Assembly: GCA_011109175.1 (NCBI GenBank)
Contig: RDEW01000005.1
Coordinates: 904,903 to 968,902 of the forward strand
DNA length: 64,000 nt
Reading direction: 5' to 3'
DNA from: Dicyema japonicum
Lineage: Eukaryota; Animalia; Dicyemida
The position numbers and the translations under genes are program-made. This document shows, one piece after another, positions 14,484 through 52,823 of this stretch. Position 1 is the stretch's first letter. Every line of letters starts with the position of its first letter. Below the pieces are notes generated by a model that was given only the letters and a program-made list of their open reading frames with translations, was not told where the DNA came from and ran no database searches.

Positions 14484-15030
14484 TATTATAATTAAATTAA
14501 TCTAGGAAACTTGAATCGCCAGGCTGTTTCATCTGACAATAGCTATCGAGATAAGCTCTCGAAGCCATCCAGACTCATGTAGATCTTTGGTGGCTGTTTG
14601 AACCTTCATTCTCTTCTGATCCTTAGCTTTTTTAGAATCATGACCTGGTCCCGAGACTGAAGCGGGAAAAATTATCGGAGAGTATGCATCAACACACGTA
14701 ACGTCGCAAACCAGGTTCCGACCATTACCAAATGGGAATTTTGTCGTCCCGTCAGGGCGTTTGTCATCATCTTGGTTGAGACCAGTGGCTCCAAAATGCA
14801 GTTGTGGCCAGCAGTGGAAAGTGCGTTTTTCAAAGTCTCGTTGAGACAGGAATGCCTTGGGAAACGTCCCGCGTTCAACCTGCAGAACAGTGAATTGTAG
14901 CCATATGGATCGATCAAACGTCCACAACGACATTTTTGCCCCGAATACACTTTAATATAAGACATCTTCTGAATGGCAGCTAATCGTTTTGAGATATGCA
15001 TGTCTTCTCGCATCCCCAGTTGTCTCAAGG
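14484..15030 (-). mobile_element. CRE-like non-LTR retrotransposon 3' part (left-arm copy)
   Basis: CRCGRLIDPYG..LFC and GRFPRH..LNETLK..L, then RLE KRPDGTT.FPF..G..LVCDVTCVD, then an AT-rich tail. Confidence 0.8.
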
Positions 15031-17647
15031 TGCTCCTTATTTTTTAAAGGACATGTCTCGAATACGATTTCTGATTAGTCGCTTTCAGAACATTAAGATA
15101 TAGGTCCTTCCACAAGTCCACAGCCCCCAATGGTGTCATAGATACATTCAATCCAGAATAAGAGTTGAGGACCAAAATTCGATGTGTTTCTATTTCTAGC
15201 GATTAATGGTAGAGTAAATTTGAAAGGATCTTTCAGTTCGCCTTGTCAATTTAAAAAAACACGAGAATCCAATAGCAAGAATATTTCGATTGCTAAACAT
15301 ATTCACGTAATGAAGGTGTCAAAAAAGAGTTCATCTCGAATTTGAAATAACTTCTGCAACATCCATGTGGGTATTGTGGAAAATCTCATTAAATATGAGA
15401 GGTGTTCTTTCAGCAGCCATTCAGAATATTTTAAGTGTTAATCAAATGTGAATTCTGACGACAGCTACTCAAATGAAACTGAACATTCAGCATACAGGCA
15501 TATGAACTACTTTTTTAAGAGTCCTCTCGTAGAAGATGCAGTTCTAGAGGACAGTAGTATAGATGACAATGTCTTCGCAATGGGAGTTCTGAAATTCTTG
15601 ATATACCATTCTGATTGCATAGTTGGAGTCTTTGAAGGTAGATGTAATAGATTTGAATTGACGGCCATCTGAAAGTCAATGTATTTCTGTTGTAGAACGT
15701 TGTGGAATTGTTGCATTTATAGGTTTCCAATCATGAAGGGACATATATATTGGCGGTGGACACCTGGAACCGCTTTTTTTAACTGCACAGTTAAAACCAT
15801 CGCTACTTTGGTTATACGTATGTTCCATTATAACGTGGACAACTCAGGGTGTCACTATTAGCCTTGAAGTAATATATTAATTTAACTTATTTACGTAGAA
15901 AATGTTTAAAAATGTAGAAAACGTTTGTTTGAACGACTTAAATGCACAAATGTGGATATTTTATTAAAGAATACAATATTTCCATCTAATTCATACTTGG
16001 ATGCACTCCCATTTTTCTATTAATTCTTATAAAAATATCTTTTAAAATTTCGATACCACTTTTATTTTTTAATTTCACCGTAAACGCATATTAGAAGGAC
16101 CACTTTCTATTCCTGACAAAATATGAGCAAAAAATAGAATTTTCTTTACCGCAAATGTGAAATATTATCTAATTTTGTGTTCAAACAGATAAAAAGTGAA
16201 TCAATTTTTATTTTTATGGCTAGAGCTTATTTTTGTACTTTAAGCATAAACAACCAAAATCAATTAATTTAATTAAAGAAAACTAAAAATCACTTATTTT
16301 TAATGTCTAAGACCAGTGTGGGTGTTTTCCTTTACTTCTAGTGGAAAAGATTTGGGTTTCTAAAAAATCACCCAAACATACATTACTATCCTTCCTAGAA
16401 TTAACAGAAATTATTTCATTAATTAGACTGAAAATAAAAAAAAACAAGAGAACTTTATAGTTCATGGCTTGTAATTTTGTACAAATTTCTTGTACATTTT
16501 TGATGAAGTCAGTCATGAACCCCTAAAAATTAAAATATGAAAACTTGTATTTTCTTTTCTCTTTGGCATTTAAAATATGAAAACTTGTATTTTCTTTTCT
16601 CTCGGATTCCAGAGTCGATTGACGCATTACAAGTGAACGAGTTTTATTTTACGAGAAACACAATTAAATCAAACTTTACTACTCGCTTCTAAATATTGAA
16701 GGAATATATTTTCTATTCAAACAAACCTCAAGGATGACATCTCTCTCCACTACTACTCCTTCGTAATGATCAAATGACATCACGAAAATTGCAGAAACGT
16801 TGTGGTTAATTCCTCCCAAGATTCCATAAAGGTAGTCAAACGTGCTTTCATTTGACTTGACAAAGACGGTATCGTAAAGGAAAAGTAGACCAATGCAAAT
16901 ACCAGGAAAAATCATCATCGAATTGAGAATTTAAGATGGGTAGAGTATAATAGGATGGATAGTACAACAGATGCACATTTTATTTTTCCAGTTATGATGA
17001 AATCTCATCTCAATAAAGAAATCGAAGTGTTCATTATCTGAGGAAACCTTATATTTTCCAGTTTTTTTTAAATCAATGAACCCTTTTCGAATCGATATAT
17101 GTAGTTTTACTTTGCACTTGAGGAAAATTTTTAGAGAATAAATGAATATCGTCTCCAAATCTATAGCCGATCTAGTTCGACTCGAAATTTTAGATTTTTT
17201 TCAAACGGAATCGATAGACAACTCAGTTAATTCAGCAAATCTGAATGATTTTCGAAAACACGTTGCGTCTGTGATGTTTTTAAAAAGAGTAAGAAAGGCT
17301 AAAATGATTTTTTGCTTTTATATTGGCTCCCTAATAAATAGATACCCCCAATCGTCTTCACAAGATCGAATCTGACGTGCAAAAGATGTTTGGCGTTCAG
17401 CTCCCCAAGAGTTTAGTGTTTCCTGCATAAAAAGACATTAAGAAAATAAAAAATTCTCGTTTATTTTGAATCACTAATTTCGCATAAAACTATAATGCTT
17501 GCAAAAACACTTAATATTTTAATTTCGCACAAAAATCATAAATGAAATAAATAATCATTAACAGCTAGATTTTCAAAAATTTGAATAGAATTTATTAAAC
17601 CAGGAAAGAAAAATAAGGAATAGGGCTAAAGATTTTGAATCGGTTTG

Positions 17648-18352
17648 TTATTTTTTGCGTTTTTTGTTTAATTTTTCGCAATCTAAGCATTTTTCAGGCT
17701 CTTTACTTTCCTGAGCCTCCAAATAATTGAGAAAAGGCTTCAAAACTAATATGGTTAGCAAAATAATACAAAACGGTGGAATATATTTATGCATACAAGA
17801 AATGGGGTCTTCAATATCTTCGGGAGGTGGTTGGTAATACATAAATGGGTTATTACCTCCAAAATAAGATCATATGTAGATTTATGTCGATTTTGGCTAT
17901 ACGAATAGTTATAAGAGTCTTGATAGTATGAATTAGCCTCATTTTGGTACAAATTCTGATTATATGTTGGATAAGAATTAAAATCTTGGTTATAACTTTG
18001 AAATCTATTCTGGTTCGAATACTGATTATATGTTGAATTAGTATCATAATTTTGGGCGGTTGATTGAGATTGAGAATTGTCTGTAACTGAAGAGCAAACG
18101 GGATAATAATTACTAAATTTATCCCAAAGTGAACTTACTCCCACCACTTCTCAAGCAATCCAGGTTGATTCTCCCACGCTCACAGGTTTATCGTAGTTGA
18201 TCTATTTTATTAAAACAAGAATCTAACTTCTTTGGTGAAATTATCTGCAATGTCTCCGGTCTCCATATGATGGAGATACTCATAGACGTTTTCAGTTAGA
18301 CTTTAAGTTACTAAAAGAATTACTTGTAGTTATTGTTATCCTTGTTATCCAT
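17648..18352 (-). pseudogene. SSDP/LUFS-domain gene, left-arm copy with two frameshifts
   Basis: Mirror of 49190-49894, with a 1-nt insertion (GAATCAACCTGG vs GAATCGCCTGG) and a 1-nt deletion (TATGATCTTATT vs TCTGATCCTTATT). Confidence 0.75.
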
Positions 18353-19149
18353 TTTTCGTATTTACTTTGATTATTTTATTTGAAATTTTGGTATAATTAT
18401 TTTTTAATCTTATAAAAATAATATTTAAAATATAAAAAAATAATAATAGAATTATCTATTATTATTTTTATGTGAGGACTTGGCCGTAGAATTCCCTGAA
18501 TATTTTTAGTTTTATTCACTCTAGTCTAATTCAATATTAATAATCTGATTAAGGCAACTGGTTACATCGACAGAACTTAGATAAAATTTAGCCCTAACTG
18601 AACCCCAGTAAAAGTTAAGTTATTAATTTATTGTATGTATTAAAAAGATGGGCATATCATCGGCAGAGTTTTCTTGTTGAACGGCGATAATAATAAAAAC
18701 AGCCCTTCTGTCGAGGAGGAGTAATGTTTCCGCTATTAAACCTCTAGGCACGATACACATTTTATTTTTAAGAAAAAGGAAAGAACGTTTGAGAGGCCAA
18801 AATTTACTTTCATAGAATGAAGTGTAAATGATATTTTGGAGATCAAAAAAACTGCTATATTATCTTGTTTGATACAATTCTGCAAAGAAAATCAAAACTA
18901 AAAAACTGAAATTACAAGATAGTTGATAACTAGTAAAACCTTCAGATACATAATAACCTTCAGAATTGAAAAAATGACTCGTAAACTTCGTCAGAACCCT
19001 AACGTTTTCAGCTGAATTCATTAACCGTTTTGTCATTGGGAACCGAAACTCTTTGTTGAAAAACTGACTTTAAAATATAAAAAACTAACAAATTTCACTT
19101 AAAAACATAGAGAAATGTGTCAAGTTTGGTTCACATAGTCATGGAGTGA

Positions 19150-19700
19150 ACTATATACTCCTTTCCAGAGTGAGAAAATAGTTTTAAAGAATGCAAAAAC
19201 AGACCTCCATAAAGAAAAATCAAGAATGACGACGTTTAAGGAAGACATGAAAATTATATTTAGGATTCTTCGTAATTTATTTAGTGTGAGCATAAAACTT
19301 GGACGTGTCTCTAATATCTGGATGATTTCCATTTTAGTAATGTTAGAAATACCTGGAAAAACAAAGATGGATCCATTAAGCTACTATCCTATCATCTATA
19401 TATGTTCTCTATCAAAAAGTATGGAGCGATTTATTTTCAAAAGGTATTGATCTCACTGAAAGTGGAATTTTCTATGTGAGCAGCAATTGGTTTTCACTCT
19501 GACCGATTCTGTTAAAAAAAGCCATATGTTTATTAAAAATTTTGTGCTAAAGATATTTTTTGTGGGACAAAGGCCTTACTTGTCTGATGTACTTTAACTT
19601 AAGAGAGGAGTCACAAAAGGATCAATCATTAACCGCATAGTATTTAATATCTTTATGGCCGACTTCCCAATACCAACTCACCACATACAAGACTCCTGAA
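19150..19700 (+). mobile_element. Degenerate LINE RT remnant (mirror at about 47880-48400, minus strand)
   Basis: LFSVSIKLGRVSNIW...PGKTKMDPLSYYPI...LSKSMERFI is the RT domain 0-1 pattern. Confidence 0.6.
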
Positions 19701-20241
19701 ATACGTGAATGATGTGTTAATATTTGATGTGGCTTAGTCGGAATAGATGTCGCAAGGAAAATTAAAAGAATATAAGTAAGATATAAACCGATCACTGAAT
19801 CCGGGGCCACATGAGATCCATCCCCTAGAAAAGAAGAAGCCCATTTTTTTCTTAAATAAGGTTAAAATAATAATTTTGGTCTAAGATAAAATTTGACGTC
19901 AAATGGGGTAAAGAAGGGGATGACAATTTTTTTTAAAATAAAAGTAAAAATGAACTTTTTAGTTTATCCCAAACAATTATAAGTAATTCGCAGACAGGTG
20001 AAATTAAATATTTCCCATGCAGAAATAAGAGACTCTGATTCAGGGAGTTTTACATGGGGCTAAAAGGTAAGTCAAATAAAATTATTGTTGACAACAAATG
20101 TAAGAAATATAACGCTCATACTACTTTAAAGTCCTGTAACTCCAATAAGTGCATCCAACATATCTGCAAATGTATAAATAAAGGAACCAATAATGTCATC
20201 TTCATTCCAGAACTAAATGAAAAAGACAAATAATATAAACA

Positions 20242-20400
20242 TACAGTCCGACCTCGTTATGGGGAAACCCAAACTGCCGAGAAAACCCCAATTTTGGGGA
20301 GATTTTATAATTTTGATAATAATGAAATTTTTTTAACTAATAAACCCCCAGATGGGGACAATAAGTGTGACAATTCTTAATTTTTAAATTTGTCTTAGAA
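20242..20400 (+). mobile_element. Single end of a pogo/Tigger-like MITE (mirror TIR at 47318-47336)
   Basis: TA-CAGTCCGACCTCGTTAT at 20242-20260, followed by short palindromes (CCCCAATTTTGGGG, CCCCAGATGGGG). No second TIR found within the arm. Confidence 0.4.
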
Positions 20401-21059
20401 AATTTTGAAGGGATGTGACCAGGAAGTTAAATCAAAATGAAAAAATCTGAATATATAAGAAAATAAATTCAGATCTGTATAAATACTTTAAAGGAAGTCC
20501 GACTGAAAAGGGAAGAAATCTTATGTGAGGCTATATGTCAATTTGGGTAATTGGTACCAATTAAATACGGAATTTAAAGTTTTTTGTTCTCTCAGATGCA
20601 AAAGTTTCCCGGCCAATATTAAAACTTATTTTTGCAAAATTGCAAATAGCCAATCTAACAAAGACTTACTGATAGATGATGTAACTTGTCTGCTTGTGGC
20701 CTGGGACGGAATAAATCATAAATACGAAATTGCTTTGGAAAGTCTCGGAAAATAAACTTTATGATACTAGAAAACAACATTAATAAGAATATAATTGGAA
20801 AATGAAAAAGAGACTTTTTATGATGATCCGAAGAAGATAACAAGAGACATTTAGAGTATGAAGTTATGAAAGAAACGGAACGTGCTTTTAGAATGCACCT
20901 TAATGTAGTCAAACAAGAAACTCTTGAAACTGTTCTTAATATTATTTTTTGCATTCACTACAAAAAAAAGAACAAAATAACATGAAAATGACAGATTTAT
21001 TTATCAATAAATAAAAATCTAATCATTTATCTTGTTTTCAATACATATTTTATTTTAAC

Positions 21060-21370
21060 AGATAAAGGAGATCTTCCGTACGATAGTGGAGGGTATCTTC
21101 AACGTCCGGTTTGAGGAACACTCATGGAAGCAAGCCACGCTGCCAGTGAGACTCGGAGGACTTGGAATTCTGACCCTGTGAACCTTTCTCTCTCTTCATG
21201 CCTATCATCGCTAGTGGCCTGTAACTCCCATGTTAAGAGGATTCCACACTCTCTACCTGAATTCTCTATTGACAAGGACGCCGACCATGCTCGTGAGGCC
21301 TGGAGAGGCACTTATCAGCTTTCCCTGCCTTCCTCGTTCTCTCAGCGGGGCTTGTTAGATTATATATTAA
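21060..21370 (+). mobile_element. CRE-like RT C-terminal fragment (mirror at 46195-46500, minus strand)
   Basis: An alternative frame reads WKQATLPVRLGGLGIL, also seen at about 62420-62470. Confidence 0.6.
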
Positions 21371-23359
21371 TCTAACTCTTTCTTTAAATAAATAAGAAAA
21401 TCAGGGTAATTAGTTATCCCCACCGACATAGTCGACCATGTGTTTCGCCTCATGGTAGCTTTATTGATCAACTTGAAAGCTCATTGGGTTTTGCAGACGT
21501 CATATGAGCGTGGCCAGACATCCCAGTCTCTTGAGGAAGGATAAATATTTCTTACTTAATATTTTTCTTTAATCTGATATTTTTGTATGTTAAATCAGAT
21601 AGAATTAGGCATTTGTTGCAATAGAGGTACGCCATCACCCCAACATTCCGATTACTTGGCTAATTGGTCAAGAAAATTGTTATTATTTTTACCCCCAGGA
21701 TCATTGGGTCAAAGAGAAGAAGTAAAAGTTCTCGGGGTCGAAAATCCTTACATTGGACATGGTCAAGGAAATAAAAATTCTAAAAATTTTTGGTTAAAAT
21801 TTTAAATCCATAATTAAATAAAGAAATTTTATAAAAATCATAAATTACAATTTTAAGACTTGGGTTGCCCTAATTAATTGAATTTTGAATTATTAGACAA
21901 TTTTGTTAATTTGATTGATAACTCCCGTTTAGAAAAATTTCTTCCAATCTGTTCCCCAAACCAAATAATTTTTTCATCCATTTTAATAACTTTTATAAGT
22001 TCTTGGAAACTCATGGGACATTCAGAGCTTTTATTAACAACAGCCAAGTAAAAATTATCAATAAATGGCAGCTTTAAAAATTATTTAAATGATTACCTGT
22101 TTTTTGAGAATAAAACAGTATTTATTCAGGATCAATCTTGCCTGATCGACATCAGTGTTGATGCGAAAAACGTATTCTTTTTCTGATGAGAATTTCACTA
22201 TGTGGAATATAAATGCCAACAAAATAAAGTATTTTATAAAACTTTCCATAAATTAACGAATAAATTCAAGTTTTTGTTTAAATTGAATAAAATTTCCATA
22301 TTAAGAAACAAAAATATTAACAAAGGAAATAAAAAATTTTAACGGGTAATTTTAATTTCTGAGTTCTGATTCAAAAAAATCTTAATTTTTTTAATTTTGT
22401 ATTGAATACCATATAAGGCCATGTGATTTTGATAAAATGAAGCAATTTTGAAAATAATCAGGTCTTTCTGTTTTACTTAAAATAAAAATATATAAACAAG
22501 CTTTTTTGGATTAAATTATTAACCCAGCTTTGCTTGTATGTAAGAAGAACTTAAGACATAAAAACGCGATTCTAAGATAGGTCGTTCCAGAAAAAACGTG
22601 CTTCCTTGTTGCGGTGTATTTCCATATGGTATCACTTGTATGTGCTTGTGTTCTAAATAAAACACACAGTGAACAAAAATATTCAAATATTCCAAACATT
22701 CCGAGAATATATTCGATTTTAATTATTAGCACATTATCATCCGATATGTCTTTTAATGGATGAATTCTTAATCTCACATGTTTATATTCAAGCTTCATTT
22801 TATGTCCACTTTCTCCTTTAGATCACTGATGCCTCTTATTAGATGAATTTACCAAACAGAACGGAATCTTTCGACCAGGTAAATACCAGTGTGGAACTTG
22901 AATCTACAAGTAATCGTGAGTCGAGCGCTAACCACTATACTGTCTAGTCACATGGCTAATAAGTTCATATGTTTATGAGAAATACGAAAAGCTTTAAATG
23001 CGAAATATCTTATCAATATTATTAATATCAGACATAAATAATTAATTATAGACAGATAATAGTAAAATCATGTCTAATATCATCATGTGATGTACATCAG
23101 ACAACATTCCGTTCGGCAATTGGAACAATGGAGACGCACAGGCTTTGGATGGCACGTAGATCAAGGTTAAAATCTCGTCCAGCCAAAAATTGGAAGAACT
23201 TTAGAGATCACTTGTAAGAAGTTACGCGTATATTAGACCGATTCCAGGTATGTTGATAATAATGTGGGTTCGTTCGTGCTAAGTATGATGATTAAAAAAA
23301 TTTTCGACAAGTCCGTTCTAATCAGATTATTTATTAACAAAATAATTATATCAAAAATT

Positions 23360-23460
23360 ATTTAGAAATCCTGAATCGCCAGGTTGTTTCCTCTGACAAT
23401 AGCTATCAAGATACGCTCTCGAAGTCAGCAAGTCTCACGCAGATCCTTGGTGACCCTTTA
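23360..23460 (-). mobile_element. ~100-bp CRE-like 3' end (mirror at 39530-39615, plus strand)
   Basis: GAATCGCCAGG.TGTTTC.TCTGACAATAGCTATC.AGATA.GCTCTCGAAG matches 14512-14570. Confidence 0.75.
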
Positions 23461-23614
23461 GATTGTTAGTTTTTTGTATATAAACTCAAATTTGCCATCA
23501 TTTAATAAAATAAAACCCATTAATTAATCGAAATTCCTTGAGTTAAAATGAATGCAAATTTCAGTTTGAATTATGAAATACAAAGGGCTCCTGGACCGGT
23601 TCACGTCCGCGCTA

Positions 23615-24307
23615 TTATCGTTGAAACAAATGGAGGTGTAAATAGGAATTTTCAAAAATATGTGACTTCTGGCTACACTCAGAATCATGCATGACCTCCG
23701 TGAAACTCAATAGTTTCTTCAGTAGATCTCGGAACGATAAGTGGTTAATTTTCTCGAGAGATTGTGAAACGAAGAAATTAGACAGCCACTTTTTGTCCCC
23801 TTGAAATTCATTCAAACACTCAAATGGATTCTCCTTTGAAGAATCGATTTCTGTGTTGTGAAGGTCGTTCAAAAAGTTAAGAGAAAGTAAGTAAAATTCA
23901 CTCAATAAAACCTGAATATTCAAGGTTTGAAAGTCTCATCATTGATAACAAGAATAAATATTTTCTCTTGAAGTAAAATAATTTATTACGCTTTTTGATT
24001 GACACGAAATCTTTGAATTCTTTAGCTGCCATCGGCAAGGGATCTGTCTGTGATTTAGCAGCCGGTACTCGGGAATCGGTACAGATATTTAGAATTATGC
24101 TAGATTTTGATTTCTGGCAATATCGAAAAATCATAAATACTGAATCAATGACAGTAATAGTTGAAAATAGTTCAAAGGTTTAGTCAGATTTTGGAACTCT
24201 TCAAGGTGACTGTTAATCAATTTTTTATAACTTTGTGGATCATTTTTTGCCATTTCGTCTAAATTTGACCAAATTTGGTCTAGATGCTTCGTAGTAAATT
24301 TATCCAT
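23615..24307 (-). CDS. PIH1D2: PIH1-domain protein, PIH1D2-like (left-arm, more intact copy; splice or frame at the first junction unresolved)
   Basis: MDKFTTKHLDQIWSNLDEMAKNDPQSYKKLINSHL and KSSIILNICTDSRVPAAKSQTDPLPM match the recalled PIH1D2 N-terminus (QFWNLLDDLAQSDPEGYEKFIQQQL; ILFINLCQWTRIPAPQSTTHPVPL). Confidence 0.7.
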
Positions 24308-25732
24308 TAAAGTTGCTTAGCAACAAATAACTTATTCGAAATTTACTCCAAATCAATATCAATCGAATCAGTCTTTCGCAGAGAAGTGATGGTTCTATTA
24401 CTTAAACCTCCCACTTAGGCAAAAAAACAATTTATTTAAGAAAAACAGTTAGTAAATCGAAAAATGAGGTTTAGGCATAGAGTGTTCTTAACTTTTTTCT
24501 TTTTTGCTTTTATGTGAGTCTCGGAGACGATCCGGTTTCGCAGTGATTTATCCCCTTTTTGGCCTACCCCCACTTTTTTGCTATCAATGGTCTGATGTCT
24601 TCAAGGGGACAAAAAGTGGCTGTCTAATTTCTTCGTTTCACAATCTCCCGAGAAAAATAACAAAAAGTCGAAATCAAATTTAAAAATAATTTGGGTTCTA
24701 GAATTCCCGAGGTATTGCGACGGATTTAAATTTTGGATTAACGAGTGACTCGTCATAAGTAAATTATTCAGTTGCAACGGATTGTTTTTATGGATTCAAA
24801 CACGACCAGATAAGAGGAAACTAAGAACAATCTCTATTTCTTGGTCTTGGTGTATTTTGCCTATACGGAGGTTTAAGTAATCGAAACATTACACGTCTTC
24901 AAAGAAAGCAGATAATTAAAGGATAATTAAAGGACCTGAAAGCCAGGATATTTGTAACCAATTTTTGTTGAGACGTATGCAATTATTGGTCCCCAGCAGT
25001 ATAAAGCTCCTCAAAACTATCGGCCAAAGTCCAGGAACACGGAAGAGTGAACCCAAATGACTCAATGGCTCTTCCAAATCATTGCCCTCATGCTATAATT
25101 ATTATATAACCCTAAAAGGGAACACCAAAAAAAAGGAGTTAAACCATCTAATTAAGTGATCCCGGTAGACCTCAACATGGTTGAGAGCTTTTTGACATGA
25201 TCCTTCATAGTACCCACAGCTTTTCTGAATCCATGACGATCCTCTTTCGTGAGAATTTGGAGAGGCGTGGGCTTTTTTCCCAATTTACGTGTACCCGAGG
25301 CTTTTTGGTAGATGCGATCGGACTCCGATCCGCATAGAGTGATGAAGCCCGGAACCTACTAACAATTTGTTTATCAAATAAATTTTTAGTTATTTTTTTT
25401 TTTTTAATAAAAATTTTTTTTAACAATTAAACAAATGTCAGTTGAGGAAGCCTGCTGCGTGGATTGCGAACGAGTTCCCTCGGAGTATGTTATTTTTTTA
25501 AAATTATTTTGTTAAAAATAAATTATTTTAAATTCGAAAAATGAACCAAAACTCGCACAATTTATTTTTTGTAATTATGAATAGCAAGTAAAAATTTGAT
25601 TCAGAAAAATTATGTCTTGTTATGCAACGACTTAAATGTCGACACTACTCTATATAATTTTTCGATGCCAAGGAATTATTCACAAAAAATATGTTGGAAG
25701 AAATTATGGTACTTTTCTAAGCATATATTTTT

Positions 25733-35274: not shown

Positions 35275-35280
35275 CGCATT

Positions 35281-35485: not shown

Positions 35486-35497
35486 TAATCCGCATTA

Positions 35498-41417: not shown

Positions 41418-44112
41418 TTGAAGTTGACAAGTGCAGTCCATTGTATATGGAGTGTGAATGACAGGATCTGTGTTATACAAATCAGTCTAAACACTTACCT
41501 CCTTCGAAGAGCTTTCTGACAATAATAAATGTTTATGCGCCACACTGCGGGAGAGTAGCGAAAGATCCGACAGAACTAGACGACTTCTATTCAACACTGT
41601 TACGGACGTACAACGAATATGAGTCGTCATCACTAATACTCATTGCTGGGGATTTGAATGCAAAAGTCGGGATGAAGAATAACCCGGATGATGTTTTCTT
41701 GGGAGAACATGGACGTGGAATAAGAAATTTACCCGGGACAATACTTGGTCACTTTTGTATGGCAAACAACCTTTTCCTATGCAATACTGCATTTACGCAT
41801 CCTGCCTGCCCCAAAACTACGTGGATGGGGAAGCGAAGGATCTCAGAAGGAAAGCTGGTCCAATATACAACCAAATCGATTATGTCATATGCCGGGCTAA
41901 AGACAAACACTTCTAGTAAACGCACGTTCATATGAAGGCTCGACGACTGTCAGCGACCACAAGATGGTTATTGCGACCTTCACCCTGAAAAAACATGCCA
42001 TAAATACAGAATGCAAAAAATCACGAATTTGAGAAAATCAGAGGCGACTACGCGACTGAAAGGCTGATTTCTCAACCGGAGACTACTGAGAGATATCAAC
42101 AATACATTCAGACTAATATGCAGGACGTATTGGTGGATACCACGTAGAAGACGCCTGGAAACGCACAAAGGACACCATCAACGAAGCTGCTGAAGCATGT
42201 CTTGCAAAAGGGAGAATAGTAAAATGCACCTGAAGGCTATTCATCCAGATGTTCCTGAGCTTGCGAAAAGTCTAAAAGAAATAAATATGAGAAAATCAAA
42301 TGCCACTGACACTAATGCGATAAAAGCCCTTCAAGGCGAAAGACAACGTGTCAGAAGAAAAATAAAGGGTCTGAACAAGAAGCTTTTCATAGAAGAAATA
42401 GCTCCTGTATAGAAGAAGTAAACAAAGTGAAAGACAACGCACAGGTGTACGTCGCTGCCCGTTTGCTGCGGCGAACAAACCGAAGTCGACTAACCATAAA
42501 AGACGAGAACGGTAAGCTGATACTGAACACCAAAGAACAAACTGAAGCCATCGCGGCTCACTTTGAGAAGCTTTTCAACATCAAAACCATAGAAACCACC
42601 CATTTGATGGAAGGCCAAGACCCTTAGATACCAATCACGGCCGAGGAAATCAAAACGGCCTGCCGAAAACTCAAGAATAACAGAAGCCCCGGACCAGACG
42701 AAAAGAGAATACTGAAATACGGCCCTGACTCCTTTTTGAAAAACGCTACTACTAAATGAAATTTTCTAACTCAACTGCACTCTACTTTTGGGTACCGGAC
42801 TACTAATCCCCATACAAAAAATCAACAAAACAGAGGACCGCTCGAAGATTTGCGATTCATCATACTACTAAATTCATTACGCAAATTCTTAGCAAACATT
42901 GTGCTTGAACAAATAAAAGGATCTGCTTACAAATACCTACCAGTTAGTCAAAGTGGTTTTCGAGAAGGGAGATCCACAGCTGATGTGGTCTGGAGTCACA
43001 GATGGAGGTGTGCAACACACTAAACATACCATAACGGCACCAATTCTCTGGGAATTGACTATCAAGAGCTTTTGATACGGTTAACAGGAACAAGTTAATG
43101 GGGGTACTGAGCGGATTTCTTGTTAAGTCGAGTCTAAGGATGACCGAATTCTACATTCTTAACACTGAGCTCCTTGTGAGAGTCGGAAAGACCTATTCAA
43201 GAAAATTTGAAACAAACACGGGCACTCCACAAGGAGACTCCTTTTCTCCTCTACTATTCACAATTTACTTGGAAGCCGCTATGAGGGAACTTAGACCGTT
43301 ATACCAAGGAAAGACGAAAGAAGTGATCTACGCGGACGATGTAATCCTAATTTCTGAAGACAAAGAGGTCCTGGAACACCTATTAGAAAAAGCACCAGAA
43401 GTACTAGGGAAATGGTTTCTTACTGTGAACAGAGAAAAAACAGAACTCACAGAGATAAGAAGGATGAGTAACGTCCTAGAAGAGAAGTGACGACAAGTAA
43501 AGAAACTCGGTTCACTTATGGGAGATAGCGAAGATATTTTACGTAGGAAATGAAAAATCTATAGCTCAATCAAAAAAGTATCAACACGAAAATAAGAATC
43601 ATATTATACGACTCAATCATAAAACCCGTACTTTTATATAACGCTGAAACTTGGGCGACCTCATAAGCAGATATGGAAATACTAGATCGTTCCATAGAGA
43701 TCAGCTGAGAAAAATAACAGGAACTACTTGGCCTATGAGAATATCGAGAAATGCTTTATATAAGAGATGCAGCACTAGACATATCAGCTTAGAAGTACTG
43801 GAATCCCGATGGAAGCTCTTCGGACACGTGCTGAGGATGGAATTAACATCCCCATCGAACATATCTATGGAAACATACTATGTTAGTCAAGATGTAAGCA
43901 ATCGTGGAAGACCTAGAACAACACTACCAATAGTTTACAAAAAGACCTAATCAATATCAAAAAAATCAAAAAATGCCGACGAACTGCACAATATGAGCGC
44001 CTTGACTAGGAACAGGAGAGCTTGGAAAAAAATGATATCTAACCTTGTTTCTTTTGCTGCACATGCAGGTGCTATAATTACTATGGCTCGCGTGAAGTGC
44101 TTAAATAATAAA
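41418..44112 (+). mobile_element. Second RTE family A copy, 5'-truncated and more decayed
   Basis: Direct repeat of 32540-35270; ORFs 41654, 42197, 42427, 43098 and 43651 correspond to 32775-35156. Confidence 0.92.
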
Positions 44113-44394
44113 TAGCTTAATTAATATATAAATTTTTGTGTCAACTTCTGGATGTAACCCTACTTTAAATTTTTTTGAGAATACACACTTACACGTCCCT
44201 TTATGACTGATATACACTTTTAAACTTCATTTTCTAGACAATTTGTTCCACGTTCTTGTGGTTATCTGTTTTCTTCTTCCATTCTACTCTATCTTGTCCT
44301 ATTCTATTCTACTTATTTATTTTATGTATTTTTTTGTTAATTATGCATTTGTGTTTGGTACTAACCAACAATCATTATAATGAAAAAATATCTG

Positions 44395-44520
44395 GGCACG
44401 AAGAAGAACATTAGGCGTTTCATTATTGAAGTGAATCTAATGACGCATCAATTGAACGAAGATAAATTTTTAATCAATTAGCCACATATTACCACATGAC
44501 ACCACGTGGATAAATAATTG
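44395..44520 (-). repeat. Degenerate copy of the SINE-like 5' half
   Basis: Plus strand AATGACGCATC...CAATTAGCCACAT..TACCACATGACACCACGTGG parallels AATGACGCCATC...CCAACTAGCCACAT (12450-12498) and the head module. Confidence 0.5.
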
Positions 44521-44723
44521 GTAAAAAATAGTGACTTTTTTTATTTTGCCATTTTAATTTTATGGACAAACTATAAAAAAATTCAAAACGTCGCGCTCAG
44601 AACAATTACTTTATGTATCAAATCAACCCCAATTGATCATTTTCACTGGAATCAAAATCCTTCCCATTGCAATTGGAACTGAGACTTCAAAACTTCTTCA
44701 AGAAATCTGAAAATTACAAACAT

Positions 44724-45670
44724 GTGATCTAAAGGAGAAAGTGGACATAAAATGAAGCTTGAATATAAACATGTGAAATTAAGAACCCATCCATTAAAAG
44801 ACATATCGGATGATAATGTGCTAATAATTAAAATCGAATATATTTTCGGAATGTTTGGTATATTTGAATATTTTTGTTCACTGTGTGTTTTATTTAGAAC
44901 ACAAGCACATACAAGTGAACACATATGGATATACACCGCAACAAGGAAGCACGTTTTTTCTGGAACGACCTATCTTAGTATTGCGTTTTTAAGTCTTAAG
45001 TTCTTTTTACATACAAGCGATCCCGAGTTAATTACTTAATCCAAAAAAGCTTGTTTATATATTTTTATTTCTAAGTAAAACAGAAAGACCTGATTATTTT
45101 CGAAATTGCTTCATTTTATCAAAATCACATGGCCTTATATGGTATTCAATACAAAATTAAAAAAATTAATATTTTTTTGAATCAGAACTCAGAAATTAAA
45201 ATTACACGTTAAAATTTTTTATTTCCTTTGTTAATATTTTTGTTTCTTAATATGGAAATTTTATTCAATTTAAACAAAAACTTGAATTTATTCGTTAATT
45301 TATGGAAAGTTTTATAAAATACTTTATTTTGTTGGCATTTATATTCCACATAGTGAAATTCTCATCAGAAAAAGAATACGTTTTTCGCATCAACACTGAT
45401 GTCGATCAGGCAAGATTGATCCTGAATAAATACTGTTTTATTCTCAAAAAACAGGTAATCATTTAAATAATTTTTAAAGCTGCCATTTATTGATAATTTT
45501 TACTTGGCTGTTGTTAATAAAAGCTCTGAATGTCCCATGAGTTTCCAAGAACTTATAAAAGTTATTAAAATGGATGAAAAAATTATTTGGTTTGGGGAAC
45601 AGATTGGAAGAAATTTTTCTAAACGGGAGTTATCAATCAAATTAACAAAATTGTCTAATAATTCAAAATT
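44724..45670 (+). other. Unidentified spliced gene fragment (mirror at 21880-22826, minus strand)
   Basis: ORF 44752-45039 is retained in both arms. Stop-free exon-like segments SEKEYVFRINTDVDQARLILNKYCFILKKQ and AVVNKSSECPMSFQELIKVIKMDEKIIWFGEQIGR. No family recognised. Confidence 0.3.
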
Positions 45671-48600
45671 CAATTAATTAGGGCAACCCAAGTCTTAAAA
45701 TTGTAATTTATGATTTTTATAAAATTTCTTTATTTATTATGGATTTAAAATTTTAACCAAAAATTTTTAGAATTTTTATTTCCTTGACCATGTCCAATGT
45801 AAGGATTTTCGACCCCGAGAACTTTTACTTCTTCTCTTTGACCCAATGATCCTGGGGGTAAAAATAATAACAATTTTCTTGACCAATTAGCCAAGTAATC
45901 GGAATGTTGAGGTGATGGCGTACCTCTATTGCAACAAATGCCTAATTCTATCTGATTTAACATACAAAAATATCAGATTAAAGAAAAATATTAAGTAAGA
46001 AATATTTATCCTTCCTCAAGAGACTGGGATGTCTGGCCACGCTCATATGACGTCTGCAAAACCCAATGAGCTTTTCAAGTTGATCAATAAAGCTACCATG
46101 AGGCGAAACGCATGGTCGACTATGTCGGTGGGGATAACTAATTAACCTGATTTTCTTATTTATTTAAAGAAAGAGTTAAATTAATATATAATCTAACAAG
46201 CCCCGCTGAAAAACGAGGAAGGCAGGGAAAGCTGATAAGTGCCGCTCCAGGCCTCACGAGCATGGTCGGCGTCCTTGTCAATAGAGAATTCAGGTAGAGA
46301 GTGTGGAATCCTCTTAACATGGGAGTTACAGGTCACTAGCGATGATAGGTATGAAGAGAGAGAAAGGTTCACAGGGTCCGAATTCCAAGTCCTCCGAGTC
46401 TCACTGGCAGCGTGGCTTGCTTCCATGAGTGTTCCTCTAACTGGACGTTGAAGATACTCTCCACTGTCGTACGGAAGATCTCCTTAATCTATTAAAATAA
46501 AATATGTACTGAAAACAAGATAAATGATTAGATTTTTATTTATTGATAAATAAATCTGTCATTTTCATGTTATTTTGTTCTTTTTTTCGTAGTGAATGCA
46601 AAAAATAATTTTAAGAACATTTTCAAGAGTTTCTTGTTTTACTACATTAAGGTGCATTCAGAAAGCACGTTCAGTTTCTTTCATAACTTCATACTCTAAA
46701 TGTTTCTTGTTATCTTCTTCGGATTATCATAAAAAGTCTCTAAATTTTCATTTTCCAATTATATCTGATTAATGTTGTTTTCTAGGATCATAAAGTTCAC
46801 TTTCCGAGAGCTTTCCAAAGCATTTTCGCATTTATGATTTATTCCGCCCAGGCCACGAGCAGACAAGTTACATTATCTATCAGTAAGTCTTTATTAGATT
46901 GGCTATTTGCAATTTTGCAAAAATAAGTTTTAATATTGGCCGGTAAACTTTTTCATCTGAGAGAACAAAAAATTTTAAATTCCGTATTTAATTGGTACCA
47001 TTTACTCAAATTGACATATAGCCTCACATAAGATTTCTTCCCTTTTCAGTCGGACTTCCTTTAAAGATATCATATATCTCACAAATAAATTCATATTTAT
47101 ACAGATCTGAATTTATTTTCTTATATATTCAGATTTTTTCATTTTGATTTAACTTCCTGGTCACATCCCTTCAAAATTTCCTAAGACAAATTTAAAAATT
47201 AAGAATTGTCACATATATTGTCCCCATCTGGGGGTTTATTAGTTAAAAAAATTTCATTATTATTAAAATTATAAAATCTCCCCAAAATTGGGGTTTTCTC
47301 GGCAGTTTGGGTTTCCCATAACGAGGTCGGACTGTATGTTTGATATTATTTGTCTTTTTCATTTAGTTCTGGAATGAAGATGACATTATTGGTTCCTTTA
47401 TTTATATACTTGCAGATATGTTGGATGCACTTATTGGAGTTACGACTTTAAAGTAGTATGAGCTTTATACTTCTTGCATTTGTTGTCAGCAATAATTTTA
47501 TTTGACTTACCTTTTAGCCCCATGTAAAACTCCCTGAATCAGAGGCTCTTATTTCTGCATGGGAGATATTCAATTTCACCTATTCGCGTATTACTTATAT
47601 TCATGTGGGATAAACTAAAAAGTTCATTTTTACCTTTATTTAAGAAAAAAATTGTCATCCCCTTCTTTACCCCATTTGACGTCAAATTTTATCTTAGACC
47701 AAAATTATTATTTTAACCTTATTTAAGAAAAAAATGGGCTTCTTCTTTTCTAAGGGATGGATCTCATGTGGCCCCGGATTCAGTCATCGGTTTATTTCTT
47801 ACTTATATACTTTTAATTTTCCTTGCGACGTCTATTACGACTAAGACACATCAAATATTAACACATCATCCACGTATTTCAGGAGTCTCGTATTTGATGA
47901 GTTGGTATTGGGAAGTCGCCATCAAGATATTAAATACTACGCGGTTAATGATTGATTCTTTTGGGACTCCTTTCTTAACTTATATAAATCAGACAAATAA
48001 GGCCTTTGTCCCACAAAAAATATCTTGAGCACAAAATTTTTTATAAACTTATGGCTTTTTTTAACAGAATCGGTCAGAGTGAAAACCAATTGCTGCTCAC
48101 ATAGAAAATTCCACTTTCAGTGAGATCAATACCTTTTTGAAAATGAAACGCTCCATACTTTTTGATAGAGAACATATATAGATGATAGGATAGAAGCTTG
48201 ATGGATCCATCTTTGTTTTTCCAGGTATTTCTAACATCACTAGAATGGAAATCATCCAGATATTAGAGACACGTCCAAGTTTTATGCTCACACTAAATAA
48301 ATTACAAAGAATCCTAAATATAATTTTCAAGTATTTCTTAAACGTCGTCATTCTTGATTTTTCTTTATGGAGCTCTGTTTTTGCATTCTTAAAAACTATT
48401 TTCTCATTCTGGAAAGGAGTATATAGTTCACTCCATGACTATGTGAACCAAACTTGACACATTTCTCTATGTTTTTAAGTGAAATTTGTTAGTTTTTTAT
48501 ATTATAAAATCAGTTTTTCAACAAAGAGTTTCCGTTCCCACAGACAAAACGGTTTATAAATTCAGCTGAAAACGTTAGGGTTCTGACGAAGTTTACGAGT

Positions 48601-49189: not shown

Positions 49190-49894
49190 ATGGATAACAA
49201 GGATAACAACAACTATAAGTAATTCTTTTAGTAACTTAAAGTCTAACTGAAAATGTCTATGAGTATCTCCATCATATGGGGGCTGGAGACATTGCTGATA
49301 ATTTCATCAAAGAAGTGAGATTCTTGTTTTAATAAAATAGATCAACTACGACAAGCCTGTGAGTGTGGGAGAATCGCCTGGATTGCTTGAAAAGTGGTGG
49401 GAGTAAGTTCACTTTGGAATAAATTTAGTAATTTTTATCCCGTTTACTCTTCAGTTACAGACAATTCTCAATCTCAATCAACCGCCCAAAATTATGATAC
49501 TAATTCAACATACAATCAGTATTCGAACCAGAATAGATTTCAAAGTTATAACCAAGATTTTAATTCTTATCCAACATATAATCAGAATTTGTACCAAAAT
49601 GAGGCTAATTCATACTATCAAGACTCTTATAATTATTCGTATAGCCAAAATCGACATAAATCTACATCTGATCCTTATTTTGGAGGTAATAACCCATTTA
49701 TGTATTACCAACCACCTCCCGAAGATATTGAAGACCCCATTTCTTGTATGCATAAATATATTCCACCGTTTTGTATTATTTTGCTAACCATATTAGTTTT
49801 GAAGCCTTTTCTCAATTATTTGGAGGCTCAGGAAAGTAAAGAGCCTGAAAAATGCTTAGATTGCGAAAAATTAAACAAAAAACGCAAAAAATAA
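49190..49894 (+). CDS. SSDP: SSDP/SSBP2-4-like LUFS(LisH) protein, 209 aa, with an N/Q/Y-rich middle, a C-terminal hydrophobic helix and KKRKK
   Basis: Exons 49190-49218, 49242-49314, 49341-49402 and 49429-49894 are joined by GT-AG introns of 23, 26 and 26 nt, giving 630 nt in frame. The product includes VYEYLHHMGAGDIADNFIKEINYDKPVSVGESPGLLEKWWDNFYPVYS, matching the SSDP motif VYEYL.H.GA..SA..F..EI.W...ITLGEPPGFL..WW.VFW.LY. Confidence 0.85.
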
Positions 49895-52189
49895 CAAACC
49901 GATTCAAAATCTTTAGCCCTATTCCTTATTTTTCTTTCCTGGTTTAATAAATTCTATTCAAATTTTTGAAAATCTAGCTGTTAATGATTATTTATTTCAT
50001 TTATGATTTTGGTGCGAAATTAAAATATTAAGTGTTTTTGCAAGCATCATAGTTTTATGCGAAATTAGTGATTCAAAATAAACGAGAATTTTTTATTTTC
50101 TTAATGTTTTTTTATGCATGAAACACTAACTCTTGGGGGAGCTGAACGTCAAACATATTTTGAACGTAAGATTCGATCTTGTGAAGACGATTGGGGTAAT
50201 CTATTTATTAGGGAGCAAATAAAAAACAAAAAGTCAATTTTAGCCTTTCTTACTCTTTTTAAAAACATCACAGGACGTAACGTGTTTTCGAAAATCATTC
50301 AGATTTGCAGAATTAACTTAGTTGTCTATCGATTCCGTTTGAAAAAAAATCTAAAATTTCGAGTCGAACTTGATCGTCTATAGATTTGGAGACGATATTC
50401 ATTTATTCTCTAAAAATTTCCCTCAAGTGCAAAGTAAAACTCCATATATCGATTCGAAAAGGGTTCATTGATTAAAAAACTGGAAAATATAAGGTTTCCT
50501 CAGATAGTGGACACTACGATTTTTTTATTCCGATGAGATTTCATCACAACTGGGAAAAGAGCATGTGGATCTGTTGTACTATCCATCCTATTTTACTCTA
50601 CCCATCTTAAATTCTCAATTCGATGATGATTTTTCCTGGTATTTGCATTGGTCTACTTTTCCTTTACGATACCGTCTTTGTCAAGTCAAATGAAAGCACG
50701 TTTGACTACCTTTATGGAATCTTGGGAGGAATTAACCACAGGGCTATATATACCTTTGGGAACTGCACTAACTTCATTCATTGATCTTCCTCTGAAAAGC
50801 TTCGCTTACACGTTAGAAGGAAATTGATGGGAAGGGATCTATCCCTGTGAACGTTTCTGCAATTTTCGTGATGTCATTTGATCATTACGAAGGAGTAGTA
50901 GTGGAGAGAGATGTCATCCTTGAGGTTTGTTTGAATAGAAAATATATTCCTTCAATATTTAGAAGCGAGTAGTAAAGTTTGATTTAATTGTGTTTCCCGT
51001 AAAATAAAACTCGTTCACTTGTAATGCGTCAATCGACTCTGGAATCCGAGAAAAAGTACACTGAAATGCCAAAGAAAAAAGAAAATACAAGTTTTCATAT
51101 TTTAATTTTTATGGGTTCGTGGCTGACTTCATCAACGATGTACAAGAAATTTGTACAAAATTACAAGCGATGAACTATAAAGTTTTCTTGTTTTTTTTAT
51201 TTTCAGTCTAATTTATGAAATAATTTCTGTTAATTCTAGGAAGGATAGTAATGATTTTTTTAGAAACCCAAATCTTTTCCCACTAGAAGTGAACGAAAAA
51301 AATACACTGGTCTTAGAAATTAAAAATAAGTGATTTTTAGTTATATTTAATTAAATAATTGTTTTGGTTATTTATGCTTAAAGTACAAAAAATAAGACCT
51401 AGCCATAAAAATAAAAATTGATTCACTTTTTATTTGTTAGAACACAAAATTAGATATATTTCACATTTGCGGTAAAGAAATTTCTATTTTTTTGCTTATA
51501 TTTTGTCAGGACTAAAAAGTCCTTTCTAATATGCGTTTACGGGGAAATTAAAAAATAAAAGTGGTATCGAAATTTTAAAAGATATTTTTATAAGAATGAA
51601 TAGAAAAATGGGAGTGCATCCAAGTATGAATTAGATTGAGATATTGTATTCTTTTTACTTATTGATAAAATATCCACATTTGTGCATTTAAAGTCGTTCA
51701 AACAGACGTTTTTACATTTTTAAACATTTTCTATGTAAAAAAGTCAAATTAATATATTACTTCAAGGATAATAGTGACACCCTGAGTTGTCCACTTATAA
51801 TGGAACATACGTAAAACCAAAATAGCGATGATTTAACTGTGCAGTTAAACTCACATGGATGTTGCAGAAGTTATTTCAAATTCGAGATAAACTCTTTTTT
51901 GACACCTTCATTACGTGAATATGTTTAGCAATCGAAATATTCTTGATATTGGATTCTCGTGTTTTTTTTAAATTGACAAGGCGAACTGAAAGATCCTTTC
52001 AAATTTACTCTACCATTGATCGCTGGAAATAGAAAAAATCGAATTTTGGTCCTCAACTCTTATTCTGGACTGAATGTATCTATGACACCATTGGGGGCTG
52101 TGGACTTGTGGAAGGACCTATATCTTAATGTTCTGAAAGCGACTAATCAGAAATCGTATTCGAGACATGTCCTTTAAAAAATAAGGAGC

Positions 52190-52823
52190 ACCTTGAGACA
52201 ACTGGGGATGCGAGAAGACATGCATATCTCAAAACGATTAGCTGCCATTCAGAAGATGTCTTATATTAAAGTGTATTCGGGGCAAAAATGTCGTTGTGGA
52301 CGTTTGATCGATCCATATGGCTACAATCCACTGTTCTGCAGGTTGAACGCGGGACGTTTCCCAAGGCATGCCTGTCTCAACGTGACTTTGAAAAACGCAC
52401 TTTCCACTGCTGGCCACAACTGCATTTTGGAGCCACTGGTTCAACCAAGATGATGACAAACGCCCTGACGGGACAAAATTCCCATTTGGTAATGGTCGGA
52501 ACCTGGTTTGCGACGTTACGTGTGTTGATGCATACTCTCCGATAATTTTTCCCGCTTCAGTCTCGGGACCAGGTCATGCTTCTAAAAAAGCTAAGGATCA
52601 GAAGAGAATGAAGGTTGATCACTTGTTTGTTCCATTTCCTGTTGAGACGTCAGAAATCCTTGTCCTACAAGCGGACGATCTAGTCCGTAGGTTCTACTCA
52701 ATGATCCAAACAGCCACCAAAGATCTACATGAGTCTGGATGGCTTCGAGAGCTTATCTCGATAGCTATTGTCAGATGAAACAGCCTGGCGATTCAAGTTT
52801 CCTAGATTAATTTAATTATAATA
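52190..52823 (+). mobile_element. CRE-like non-LTR retrotransposon 3' part (right-arm copy)
   Basis: Mirror of 14484-15030; ORFs 52193-52453 and 52288-52545. Confidence 0.8.

Follow-up and report, generated by a model that had tools for sequence, protein, structure and literature searches.

Inverted duplications are among the rearrangements behind human genomic disorders, where several classes arise by non-homologous end-joining or replication template switching. Primate sex chromosomes contain ampliconic palindromes, and the arms of those on the human Y chromosome are more than 99.9% identical. [quoted passage not shown] Vertebrate assemblies contain false heterotype duplications, in which divergent haplotypes are kept and look like paralogs, frequently within one scaffold, and which are diagnosed by a gap between the copies, haploid-level depth and discordant read pairs (PMC9516828).

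The locus described here lies in a 64-kb window of the Dicyema japonicum assembly (the window being the whole stretch of DNA that was analysed), in a region rich in transposons. Self-comparison of the window by blastn bore out the original prediction of an interrupted palindrome with a 4.4-kb spacer: the reverse complement of the right arm is collinear with the left arm in eight minus-strand blocks of 91-100% identity, the spacer between the two inverted arms is unique, and no comparable homology was found elsewhere in the window outside the two arms (Table 1). Block-wise MAFFT alignment gave 96.35% identity at aligned sites (11,799 matches and 447 mismatches), a substitution divergence of 3.65% made up of 231 transitions and 216 transversions, along with 79 indels. 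Twelve kilobases at 96% identity cannot be due to chance. The left arm is the shorter (12.8 versus 21.1 kb), and its genes are on the minus strand, pointing away from the centre. On balance, the assembled haplotype probably carries a real inverted segmental duplication, old and with decaying gene copies; such a duplication is ordinary in kind.

Table 1. Features of the inverted arms, the spacer and the flanks, in window coordinates.
Feature	Position	Strand	Details
Left arm	14484-27332	-	12,849 bp; both ends cut; read as the derived copy
Right arm	31752-52823	+	21,072 bp; read as the ancestral copy in its natural context, grown by transposon insertions
Spacer	27333-31751		4,419 bp; single-copy DNA, a repeat and the 3' part of an RTE
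Assembly gap	12712-12759		48 N; 1.7 kb outside the left arm
LTR-retrotransposon integrase fragment (rve, H2C2), left flank	13366-13942	-	pol upstream region absent at 14483/14484
Repeat T1, outer end of left arm	14484-15777	-	right copy 51849-52823
RTE retrotransposon, right arm only	32244-35269	+	endonuclease and reverse transcriptase; degenerate reading frames
Right-arm-only block	40160-44723	+	4,564 bp; GT(T)GATC on both sides
Right-arm-only segment	36395-37353	+	faces a 959-bp left-arm deletion at 25733/25734
Smaller right-only blocks	50741-50849 and 52617-52706		absent from the original prediction
Left-only blocks	15373-15777 and 25431-25488
RTE tail, 5'-truncated, both arms	26629-26841	-	213 bp; right copy about 35281-35495
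Myotubularin-like relic, right copy	35601-36773	+	shared in-frame TGA within context starting 36306
Myotubularin-like relic, left copy	25726-26524	-	shared TGA within context starting 25812; phosphatase core deleted
SSDP/SSBP-like gene, right copy	49190-49894	+	open 209-codon frame; LUFS domain
SSDP/SSBP-like gene, left copy	17648-18352	-	splice sites kept; frameshifts of +1 (exon 3) and -1 (last exon)
'PIH1D2-like' reading frames, left copy	23618-24307	-	ATG at 24307; open
Longest near-identical tract	21476-22344		869 bp with 2 differences; partner 45207-46074

The anatomy of the edges is asymmetric, in that the right arm runs on into its surroundings at either end and the left arm is truncated. 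At the inner edge of the right arm, a single RTE tblastn match (amino acids 114-305) spans position 31752, running from 32032 to 31460, and the adjoining part of the spacer (30981-31751) is the 3' part of the RTE continuing out of the arm; at its outer edge, homology to the T1 family reaches 52838-52841, 15-18 bp past the edge. The left arm ends on the outer side within T1, 15-18 bp before the end of that repeat, and on the inner side within an RTE reverse transcriptase, at about amino acids 207-212. It is butt-joined to unrelated DNA (spacer DNA at the inner end, an LTR-retroelement integrase fragment at the outer end), and no shared repeat, microhomology or N was found at these junctions. 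No inverted homology was found inside the spacer, of which 29000-29400 is a repeat of about 100 copies. Homology breaks off sharply at the two outer edges; the flanks (1-14483 and 52824-64000) have no collinear homology, only short dispersed repeats common to both. The only run of more than one N in the window is the assembly gap in the left flank (a single N occurs at 10962), and both arms and the spacer lie within gap-free sequence (12760-64000).

Could the whole unit be a single giant transposon, of the foldback or composite type, with inverted T1 copies as its boundaries? T1 lies at each outer end, and no part of the arms is more similar (98.6-100% identity, with the outermost 117 bp identical in the two arms), but no target-site duplication was found around the unit at 14483/52824, where the left flank ends in ...CATGTGACA and the right flank starts with AATTTTAAT..., T1 overruns the right edge and not the left, and the arms are made up of relics of host genes and unrelated transposons rather than subrepeats. 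This origin is very improbable.

Assembler mis-joins mostly arise through repeats or at gaps. The original prediction had offered, as its alternative, two haplotypes mis-joined head-to-head through RTE repeats; there is no RTE-to-RTE join, and the flanks are non-homologous, whereas head-to-head allelic contigs should stay homologous into the flanks. The unrelated flanks, the asymmetric spacer and the continuity of the right arm with its surroundings at both ends argue for a real duplication. A more serious alternative, which we consider appreciable though improbable on balance, is a false heterotype duplication of a single-copy locus, in which either a divergent haplotype or an ortholog from a co-infecting lineage in the pool was assembled apart and, as the left arm, inserted reversed beside its allele during merging, scaffolding and gap-closing. 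The sample consisted of pooled animals from one octopus, with heterozygosity of 1.24%, and was assembled by a hybrid pipeline (Platanus, Falcon, SSPACE, GapCloser and HaploMerger) that merged Platanus and Falcon assemblies (PMC6736024), which favours such an error, as do the AV13 palindromes as a precedent (PMC8494291), the nearby run of N, and the location of both arm ends within repeats, where contigs tend to stop. Against it, the truncation of the left arm inside an RTE and T1 would require two false joins, each independent and non-homologous, within sequence free of gaps; the copies are not separated by a gap, although gaps typify such errors (PMC9516828); and inverted placement of an allelic contig would be expected to contradict read-pair and mate-pair orientation.

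The three right-only blocks of the original prediction were recovered within a few bases (32244-35269, 36395-37353 and 40160-44723). The RTE retrotransposon at 32244-35269 has a TAA-repeat end and a 5-bp target duplication (TAATC), and its site in the left arm is empty. Block 40160-44723 is either a right-arm insertion or a left-arm deletion; within it lie a LINE-like tail and a further RTE, at 41410-44111, that is 92% identical to 32532-35269. The truncated RTE tail present in both arms is flanked by an 11-bp target duplication (AATGCGGATTA). Segment 36395-37353 was rejected as a right-arm insertion because it contains the myotubularin phosphatase core (Pfam Myotub-related positions 234-288, and tblastn matches), so the difference is a 959-bp deletion in the left arm. 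A fold-back chimeric read, produced by a missed SMRTbell adapter, or another single-molecule artefact has a negligible probability: PacBio RS II data were used in the assembly (PMC6736024), but the spacer is asymmetric, 447 substitutions separate the arms, and arm-specific blocks of 0.1-4.6 kb occur with target duplications. The sequence refutes it, and the original prediction was right to exclude a simple fold-back, because the 4.4-kb spacer, the 3.65% divergence and the kilobase-scale arm-specific blocks are incompatible with one.

The duplication of a myotubularin gene was predicted, and each arm does possess a myotubularin-like copy, but both copies are relics because they have in common an in-frame TGA at the IFD-A-RP position; each also has private lesions. 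In the right copy, a context starting at 36159 holds a CAA to TAA change and a TGA that deletions of 1 bp and 2 bp have exposed, and the core reads SSDGLDKI where CSDGWDRT is expected, followed by DPYYRTIIGFEVLIEKEW. In the left copy, the exon at 25916-26098 is open and aligns to residues 164-213 of MTMR2 (chain 1zsq_A). The family assignment is based on exon matches to PF06602 (E 3.5e-11 for profile positions 50-98, 6.1e-6 for 98-139 and 1.5e-9 for 258-288) and on a match to MTMR2 in the PDB (E 5e-9); the catalytic C.DG.DR (CX5R) motif is absent from every frame of the window. Since the myotubularin copies are relics, to call the locus a gene-bearing palindrome is an overstatement.

The predicted SSDP-like gene is present in both arms, with a LUFS domain and three introns of 23-26 nt. 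The right copy has exons at 49190-49218, 49242-49314, 49341-49402 and 49429-49894 (introns of 23, 26 and 26 nt), and its spliced model, which had no match in Pfam alone, matches SSBP2 (6iwv, residues 13-65; E 2.4e-11) in an alignment that is unbroken at the predicted splice junctions it covers. The two 1-bp frameshifts of the left copy may be consensus errors. The dN/dS ratio between the copies is 0.14, a value that alleles of one functional gene would show, and this points toward a false heterotype rather than a real duplication. The reading frames labelled 'PIH1D2-like' start in the right arm with an ATG at 38679 and have four 1-bp deletions there; the predicted identity was not confirmed, as Pfam, PDB and Atlas gave no support for a PIH1 N-terminal domain in the tested exons. 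Pseudogene lesions private to one arm, together with arm-private transposon insertions with target duplications, indicate that the two copies have evolved independently.

Divergence between the arms is not uniform. The longest near-identical tract includes a perfect run of 530 bp, where uniform divergence predicts a longest perfect run of about 149 bp (the probability of a run of at least 500 bp is about 4e-7). Near-identical tracts so much longer than uniform divergence permits favour a real duplication, in which they were presumably re-homogenised by gene conversion from arm to arm.

The public reads represent one pooled sample in four runs (X1-X4), consulted as short Logan contigs, which are bubble-popped and lose minor variants. 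None of the contigs listed bridges 27332/27333, the graph breaks at the RTE, and the lack of a junction-spanning molecule among them counts against a real duplication. Summed over arm-like contigs, depth amounts to 1.6, 1.15, 0.98 and 0.95 times the spacer median (X1-X4), below the ratio of about 2 expected with two arms fixed in the pool, although contig word depth is a poor measure and is not copy number; in three of the four runs the arm-like depth is close to that of the spacer, as a false heterotype would have it. Of the left-arm sites that discriminate between the arms, the nine with the best support have nearly all of their depth (all of it, in most runs) on the right-arm letter, and left-arm letters are missing or minor, which again favours a false heterotype. 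However, these absences are not specific to the left arm, because representation of the window's haplotype is no better over the spacer (word share of 0.43-0.54, versus 0.58-0.61 over the left arm), and minor variants are dropped from Logan contigs.

At least three haplotypes of the locus are present in the reads, and contigs that are about 5-6% (in one case about 10%) diverged from the window cover nominally single-copy spacer at 28242-29159 and 30208-30424. An empty-site form of the RTE tail also occurs, joining 26628 to 26842 with 11 shared letters, at depths of 748, 80, 48 and 28 (X1-X4) that resemble those of single-haplotype contigs. Because the reads carry such diverged haplotypes even in the single-copy spacer, as well as the empty-site form, the divergence of the arms falls within the allelic range of the sample, which favours a false heterotype over a real duplication. 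Many of the 1-bp indels look like consensus errors, which points the same way; the ratio of gaps to substitutions in near-identical read contigs is about 1:1.

A sub-case of the real duplication, differing in its predicted read depths, is a lineage-specific or polymorphic duplication restricted to one minor and deeply diverged haplotype lineage of the pool, with the major lineage single-armed. It would account for a depth ratio of about 1, for the empty-site contig at single-haplotype-like depth (the RTE fragment being present in both arms), for spacer unitigs that begin at 27361 in two runs, 28 bp from the junction, as expected of a structural branch point, and for the absence of the window's own haplotype from contigs across 28242-29159. 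The read evidence is all indirect, from bubble-popped contigs, and a duplication with 3.65% divergence that is still polymorphic requires long-lived divergent lineages, so this sub-case seems unlikely.

Under the preferred reading of an old inverted segmental duplication, an ancestral stretch of about 13 kb, equivalent to the present right arm minus its later insertions, would have contained a myotubularin gene that was already dead, the 'PIH1D2-like' frame, the SSDP-like gene, the T1 repeat and two RTE fragments. An inverted copy of this stretch may have been inserted at a distance of 4.4 kb by end-joining or replication template switching, leaving non-homologous junctions at 14483/14484 and at 27332/27333, the second of which may include 28 bp of filler. 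The copies would then have diverged by 3.65%, the right arm receiving RTE-type insertions at 32244-35269 and probably at 40160-44723, the left arm losing 959 bp including the myotubularin core, and a few tracts of up to 869 bp presumably being re-homogenised. More speculative, and quite unlikely, is a real lineage-specific 38-kb palindrome segregating among deeply diverged dicyemid haplotype lineages, with gene conversion between its arms and two genes that each work in one arm only. Developmentally regulated DNA rearrangements have been reported for dicyemids, and such a palindrome, if real, might be linked to them.

Like the inverted duplications attributed to end-joining or template switching, this locus has an inverted copy a few kilobases from its source, copies that decay independently, and blunt non-homologous junctions inside unrelated repeats with possible short filler; here, in contrast, the mechanism is suggested by junction anatomy, and the left arm is read as the derived copy. 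Long inverted arms, a unique spacer, genes in both arms and tracts of near-identity suggestive of gene conversion are also features of primate sex-chromosome palindromes, but the analogy with sex-chromosome amplicons that was originally drawn fails on arm identity (96% versus more than 99.9% on the human Y): here the arms are unequal, a shared pseudogene makes up at least one of the gene pairs, and near-identity is patchy rather than extending along the whole arm. As in Adineta vaga, the material was heterozygous, and gene-bearing inverted copies that are about 96% identical share a scaffold of the draft assembly (PMC8494291); in Dicyema japonicum, however, the sequence that holds the copies has no gap, the spacer is unique and the flanks are non-homologous. 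Unlike the false heterotype duplications of vertebrates (PMC9516828), the copies have no gap between them.

An interrupted inverted duplication of about 38 kb (14484-52823), as the original prediction had it, was borne out by blastn self-comparison of the window: eight collinear minus-strand blocks, each of 91-100% identity, join 14484-27332 (the left arm) with 52823-31752 (the right arm). Block-wise global alignment of the arms gave 11,799 matches, 447 mismatches (231 transitions and 216 transversions) and 79 indels, 55 of them of 1 bp, with 96.35% identity at aligned sites. Self-comparison found no inverted homology inside the spacer (27333-31751), and the outer flanks have in common only short dispersed, non-collinear repeats. 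The sole run of N longer than one base in the window (12712-12759) lies 1.7 kb outside the left arm. The G+C content of the window is 35%; scans of it for Rfam families (at gathering thresholds), tRNA genes and tandem repeats returned nothing relevant, and Pfam searches of 20 arm ORFs matched only transposon and myotubularin families. A frame in which a tetraspanin-like CCG motif was recognised by eye is repeated in tandem at 6750-7340 and 9487-9810, the two copies being about 80% identical. The motif CACGTG occurs nine times in the window (6.4 expected) and is absent from the left arm and from those parts of the right arm that are shared and not insertions.

Coordinates of arm-specific blocks, transposon parts and micro-introns in the window
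Feature	Coordinates	Strand	Remarks
Right-only blocks	32244-35269, 36395-37353, 40160-44723, 50741-50849, 52617-52706		
Left-only blocks	15373-15777, 25431-25488		
LTR-retroelement integrase beyond left edge	13366-13942	minus	rve and H2C2 domains; upstream pol region missing
SSDP-like micro-introns, right arm	49219-49241, 49315-49340, 49403-49428		GT...AG; 23, 26 and 26 nt; homologues also in left arm
RTE parts	26600-27400, 30800-31990, 32244-35269, 41410-44111		
RTE copy with longest open frames	58138-60871	minus	488 and 336 aa

The anatomy of the edges bears on which arm is the copy. The reverse transcriptase of an RTE-family retrotransposon at the inner end of the right arm extends into the spacer, as a single tblastn HSP (aa 114-305) that runs from 32032 to 31460 across position 31752, and reaches approximately aa 468 at 30981; the left-arm copy of the same element ends at approximately aa 207-212 at 27332 and is followed by unrelated sequence. 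At the outer ends of both arms lies a repeat named T1, of which further copies (23327-23463 and 39518-39654) match the right arm to 52838-52841, 15-18 bp past the palindrome edge, and on the left align no farther than the edge at 14484/14485. The right arm thus appears to lie in its natural context at both ends, and the left arm to have been cut at both and butt-joined to foreign DNA. Inspection of the left-arm joints (14483/14484 and 27332/27333) found no shared repeat, visible microhomology or N, and no template for the 28 bp at 27333-27360 was found within the window. Edges of this kind, doubly truncated and with non-homologous joints, are characteristic of a copy that was inserted through non-homologous joining. 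A wrongly placed contig could have left the same edges, but two such errors would be required, and assembler errors are usually repeat-mediated or marked by gaps. A transposon made up of the whole unit was rejected as a reading, since no target duplication was found. A 35-bp exact inverted match between 10963-10997 and 52935-52969, oddly placed beside a single N at 10962, is probably a SINE-like repeat.

Two of the arm-specific blocks carry RTE elements. The block at 32244-35269 is a bona fide insertion: it has endonuclease and reverse transcriptase regions, a tail of TAA repeats and, as target duplication, TAATC. The block at 40160-44723, which has GT(T)GATC on both sides, contains another RTE as well as a LINE-like tail, and is either an insertion in the right arm or a deletion in the left. 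The RTE family is extremely abundant, its parts having a word depth in the reads approximately 300-1,000 times as high as single-copy sequence. T1 is an unclassified transposon-like element; its frames at 14532-15043 and 52178-52775 bear the motif RPDG...VCDVTCVDAYSP and have no Pfam match, and a 90-bp in-frame block is present in the right copy only.

The predicted myotubularin gene is present in both arms, but both copies are disabled. In tblastn comparisons with myotubularin homologs, the right-only block at 36395-37353 proved to be the phosphatase core (RSVLVHSSDGLDKI...DPYYRTIIGFEVLIEKEW, Pfam PF06602 positions 234-288), which also ruled out a truncated RTE ending in TAATAA. Because this block continues myotubularin through the core and is not an insertion, the left arm, whose copy has no core, has undergone a 959-bp deletion. 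The two copies have the same in-frame stop, a TGA at the position of the conserved IFD-A-RP, and the gene had therefore died by the time the arms separated. In addition, the right one has a TGA exposed by deletions of 1 bp and 2 bp, and a CAA-to-TAA change. The relic reads SSDGLDKI (within 36604-36773) where active enzymes have CSDGWDRT, with Cys replaced by Ser and Arg by Lys; the CX5R motif is absent from the entire window. Judged from these residues, the gene may have encoded a pseudophosphatase prior to its decay.

The SSDP-like gene was likewise confirmed in both arms. Its right copy splices to an open frame of 209 codons, of which the N-terminus matches the LUFS domain of SSBP2 (6iwv, E 2.4e-11), unbroken over the predicted splice junctions within the aligned stretch; this unbroken alignment validates the micro-introns. 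All three are kept in the left copy, and copying by way of RNA (5' transduction from T1) was rejected on that ground. A homology search returned no homologous proteins for the last exon. The left copy contains +1 and -1 frameshifts and differs from the right at seven non-synonymous and 11 synonymous positions, giving a dN/dS of 0.14, which indicates that both lineages were constrained during most of their divergence. The frame predicted to be PIH1D2-like is open on the left, and on the right is broken by four 1-bp deletions in approximately 330 bp that hold only about two substitutions; Pfam, PDB and Atlas searches gave no support for the family assignment, and a contig search returned no contigs encoding the ORF. 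As read contigs near-identical to the window have gap-to-substitution ratios of approximately 1:1, the 1-bp frameshifts in the left SSDP-like copy and the right PIH1D2-like frame are possibly consensus errors. Given these ratios, the constraint on the SSDP-like gene and the excess of 1-bp deletions over substitutions, the apparent reciprocal pseudogenisation of the two genes was downgraded and not used as evidence of paralogy.

Divergence between the arms is uneven. The arms match perfectly over stretches of 530, 336 and 257 bp, the longest expected at uniform divergence being approximately 149 bp, and in an 869-bp tract (21476-22344) they have only two differences. Arm-to-arm gene conversion fits these near-identical tracts, and a recombined allelic genealogy fits them equally well.

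Five public read runs were found, all in the form of Logan contigs: four (X1-X4) are from one sample and the fifth is almost empty. Among read contigs placed over 26000-31990, those of the sample match the window exactly to 28240 and are then approximately 5-6% diverged over 28242-29159 of the spacer, and two read variants on 30208-30424, also in the spacer, are diverged by approximately 2% and 10%. The share of window words found in the reads is 0.43-0.54 in the inner region and 0.58-0.61 in the left arm; that of left-arm words common to the right arm is only 0.42. Haplotypes in the pool are thus deeply diverged and recombined, and over 28241-29159 the contigs lack the one that was assembled. 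At the best-supported nine of 25 left-arm substitution sites in 26000-26600, the reads carry the right-arm letter at approximately 100%, the window letter being retained at approximately 30% at 26082 (X2 and X3) and 18% at 26485 (X1), shares that come from contigs in which minor variants are dropped. A contig with an empty site for a 213-bp RTE tail, which is filled in both arms (26629-26841 and approximately 35281-35495) with an 11-bp target duplication, has a depth like that of single-haplotype contigs in X1-X4; this tail is a transposon insertion polymorphism of the sample. Among the contigs listed, none crosses 27332/27333, and spacer unitigs begin at 27361 in two runs. In Logan contigs, summed arm depth is 1.6, 1.15, 0.98 and 0.95 times the spacer median in X1-X4, and so is not doubled. 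Although not decisive, these read data show that allelic divergence in the pool attains the level of the divergence between the arms, and that a haplotype other than the assembled one predominates in the contigs.

The history of the assembly bears on whether the duplication is an artefact. The DNA came from animals pooled from one octopus; the genome has 1.24% heterozygosity and 48.9% repeats; and Platanus (Illumina) and Falcon (PacBio) assemblies were merged, with SSPACE, SSPACE-LongRead, GapCloser and HaploMerger steps (PMC6736024). The raw data include PacBio RS II reads of reportedly up to 65 kb (PMC6736024) and mate-pair libraries with inserts of 7-20 kb. False duplication of one locus from two haplotypes is a serious, though not the favoured, possibility: the sample is pooled and its haplotypes deep, the pipeline is merge-based, the depth ratio is near one, the dN/dS of the SSDP-like gene is low, repeats lie at the arm ends, and there is precedent in the draft genome of Adineta vaga, whose palindromes are gone from the chromosome-level assembly (PMC8494291). 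False heterotype duplications, however, typically come with gaps and haploid-level depth (PMC9516828), and no gap separates the copies here. A real inverted segmental duplication, a reading that includes its restriction to a single haplotype lineage within the pool, is modestly favoured by this gap-free contiguity, by bounded homology with unrelated flanks, by the natural context of the right arm versus the double truncation of the left, by the non-homologous joints and by the inverted orientation. Other artefacts, or a composite transposon, account for the small probability that is left.

These observations serve chiefly to flag the assembly: approximately 13 kb of it, together with three genes that seem to be duplicated, may be redundant haplotype sequence, and counts of gene families and palindromes in the D. 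japonicum draft are not to be trusted pending a check against raw long reads. If real, the duplication adds modestly to what is known, as a single dated inverted segmental duplication from a parasite whose genome is very reduced and rich in transposons, and it would be usable as a local clock of RTE activity, of deletions and of gene conversion. It is also, on a small scale, a natural record of how a dicyemid genome has taken up RTE copies, lost sequence and possibly undergone gene conversion. It is ordinary in kind, with nothing mechanistically new. The suggested likeness to the high-identity ampliconic palindromes of sex chromosomes did not hold, for the duplication differs from them in its 96% identity, its unequal arms and its one pair of shared pseudogenes.
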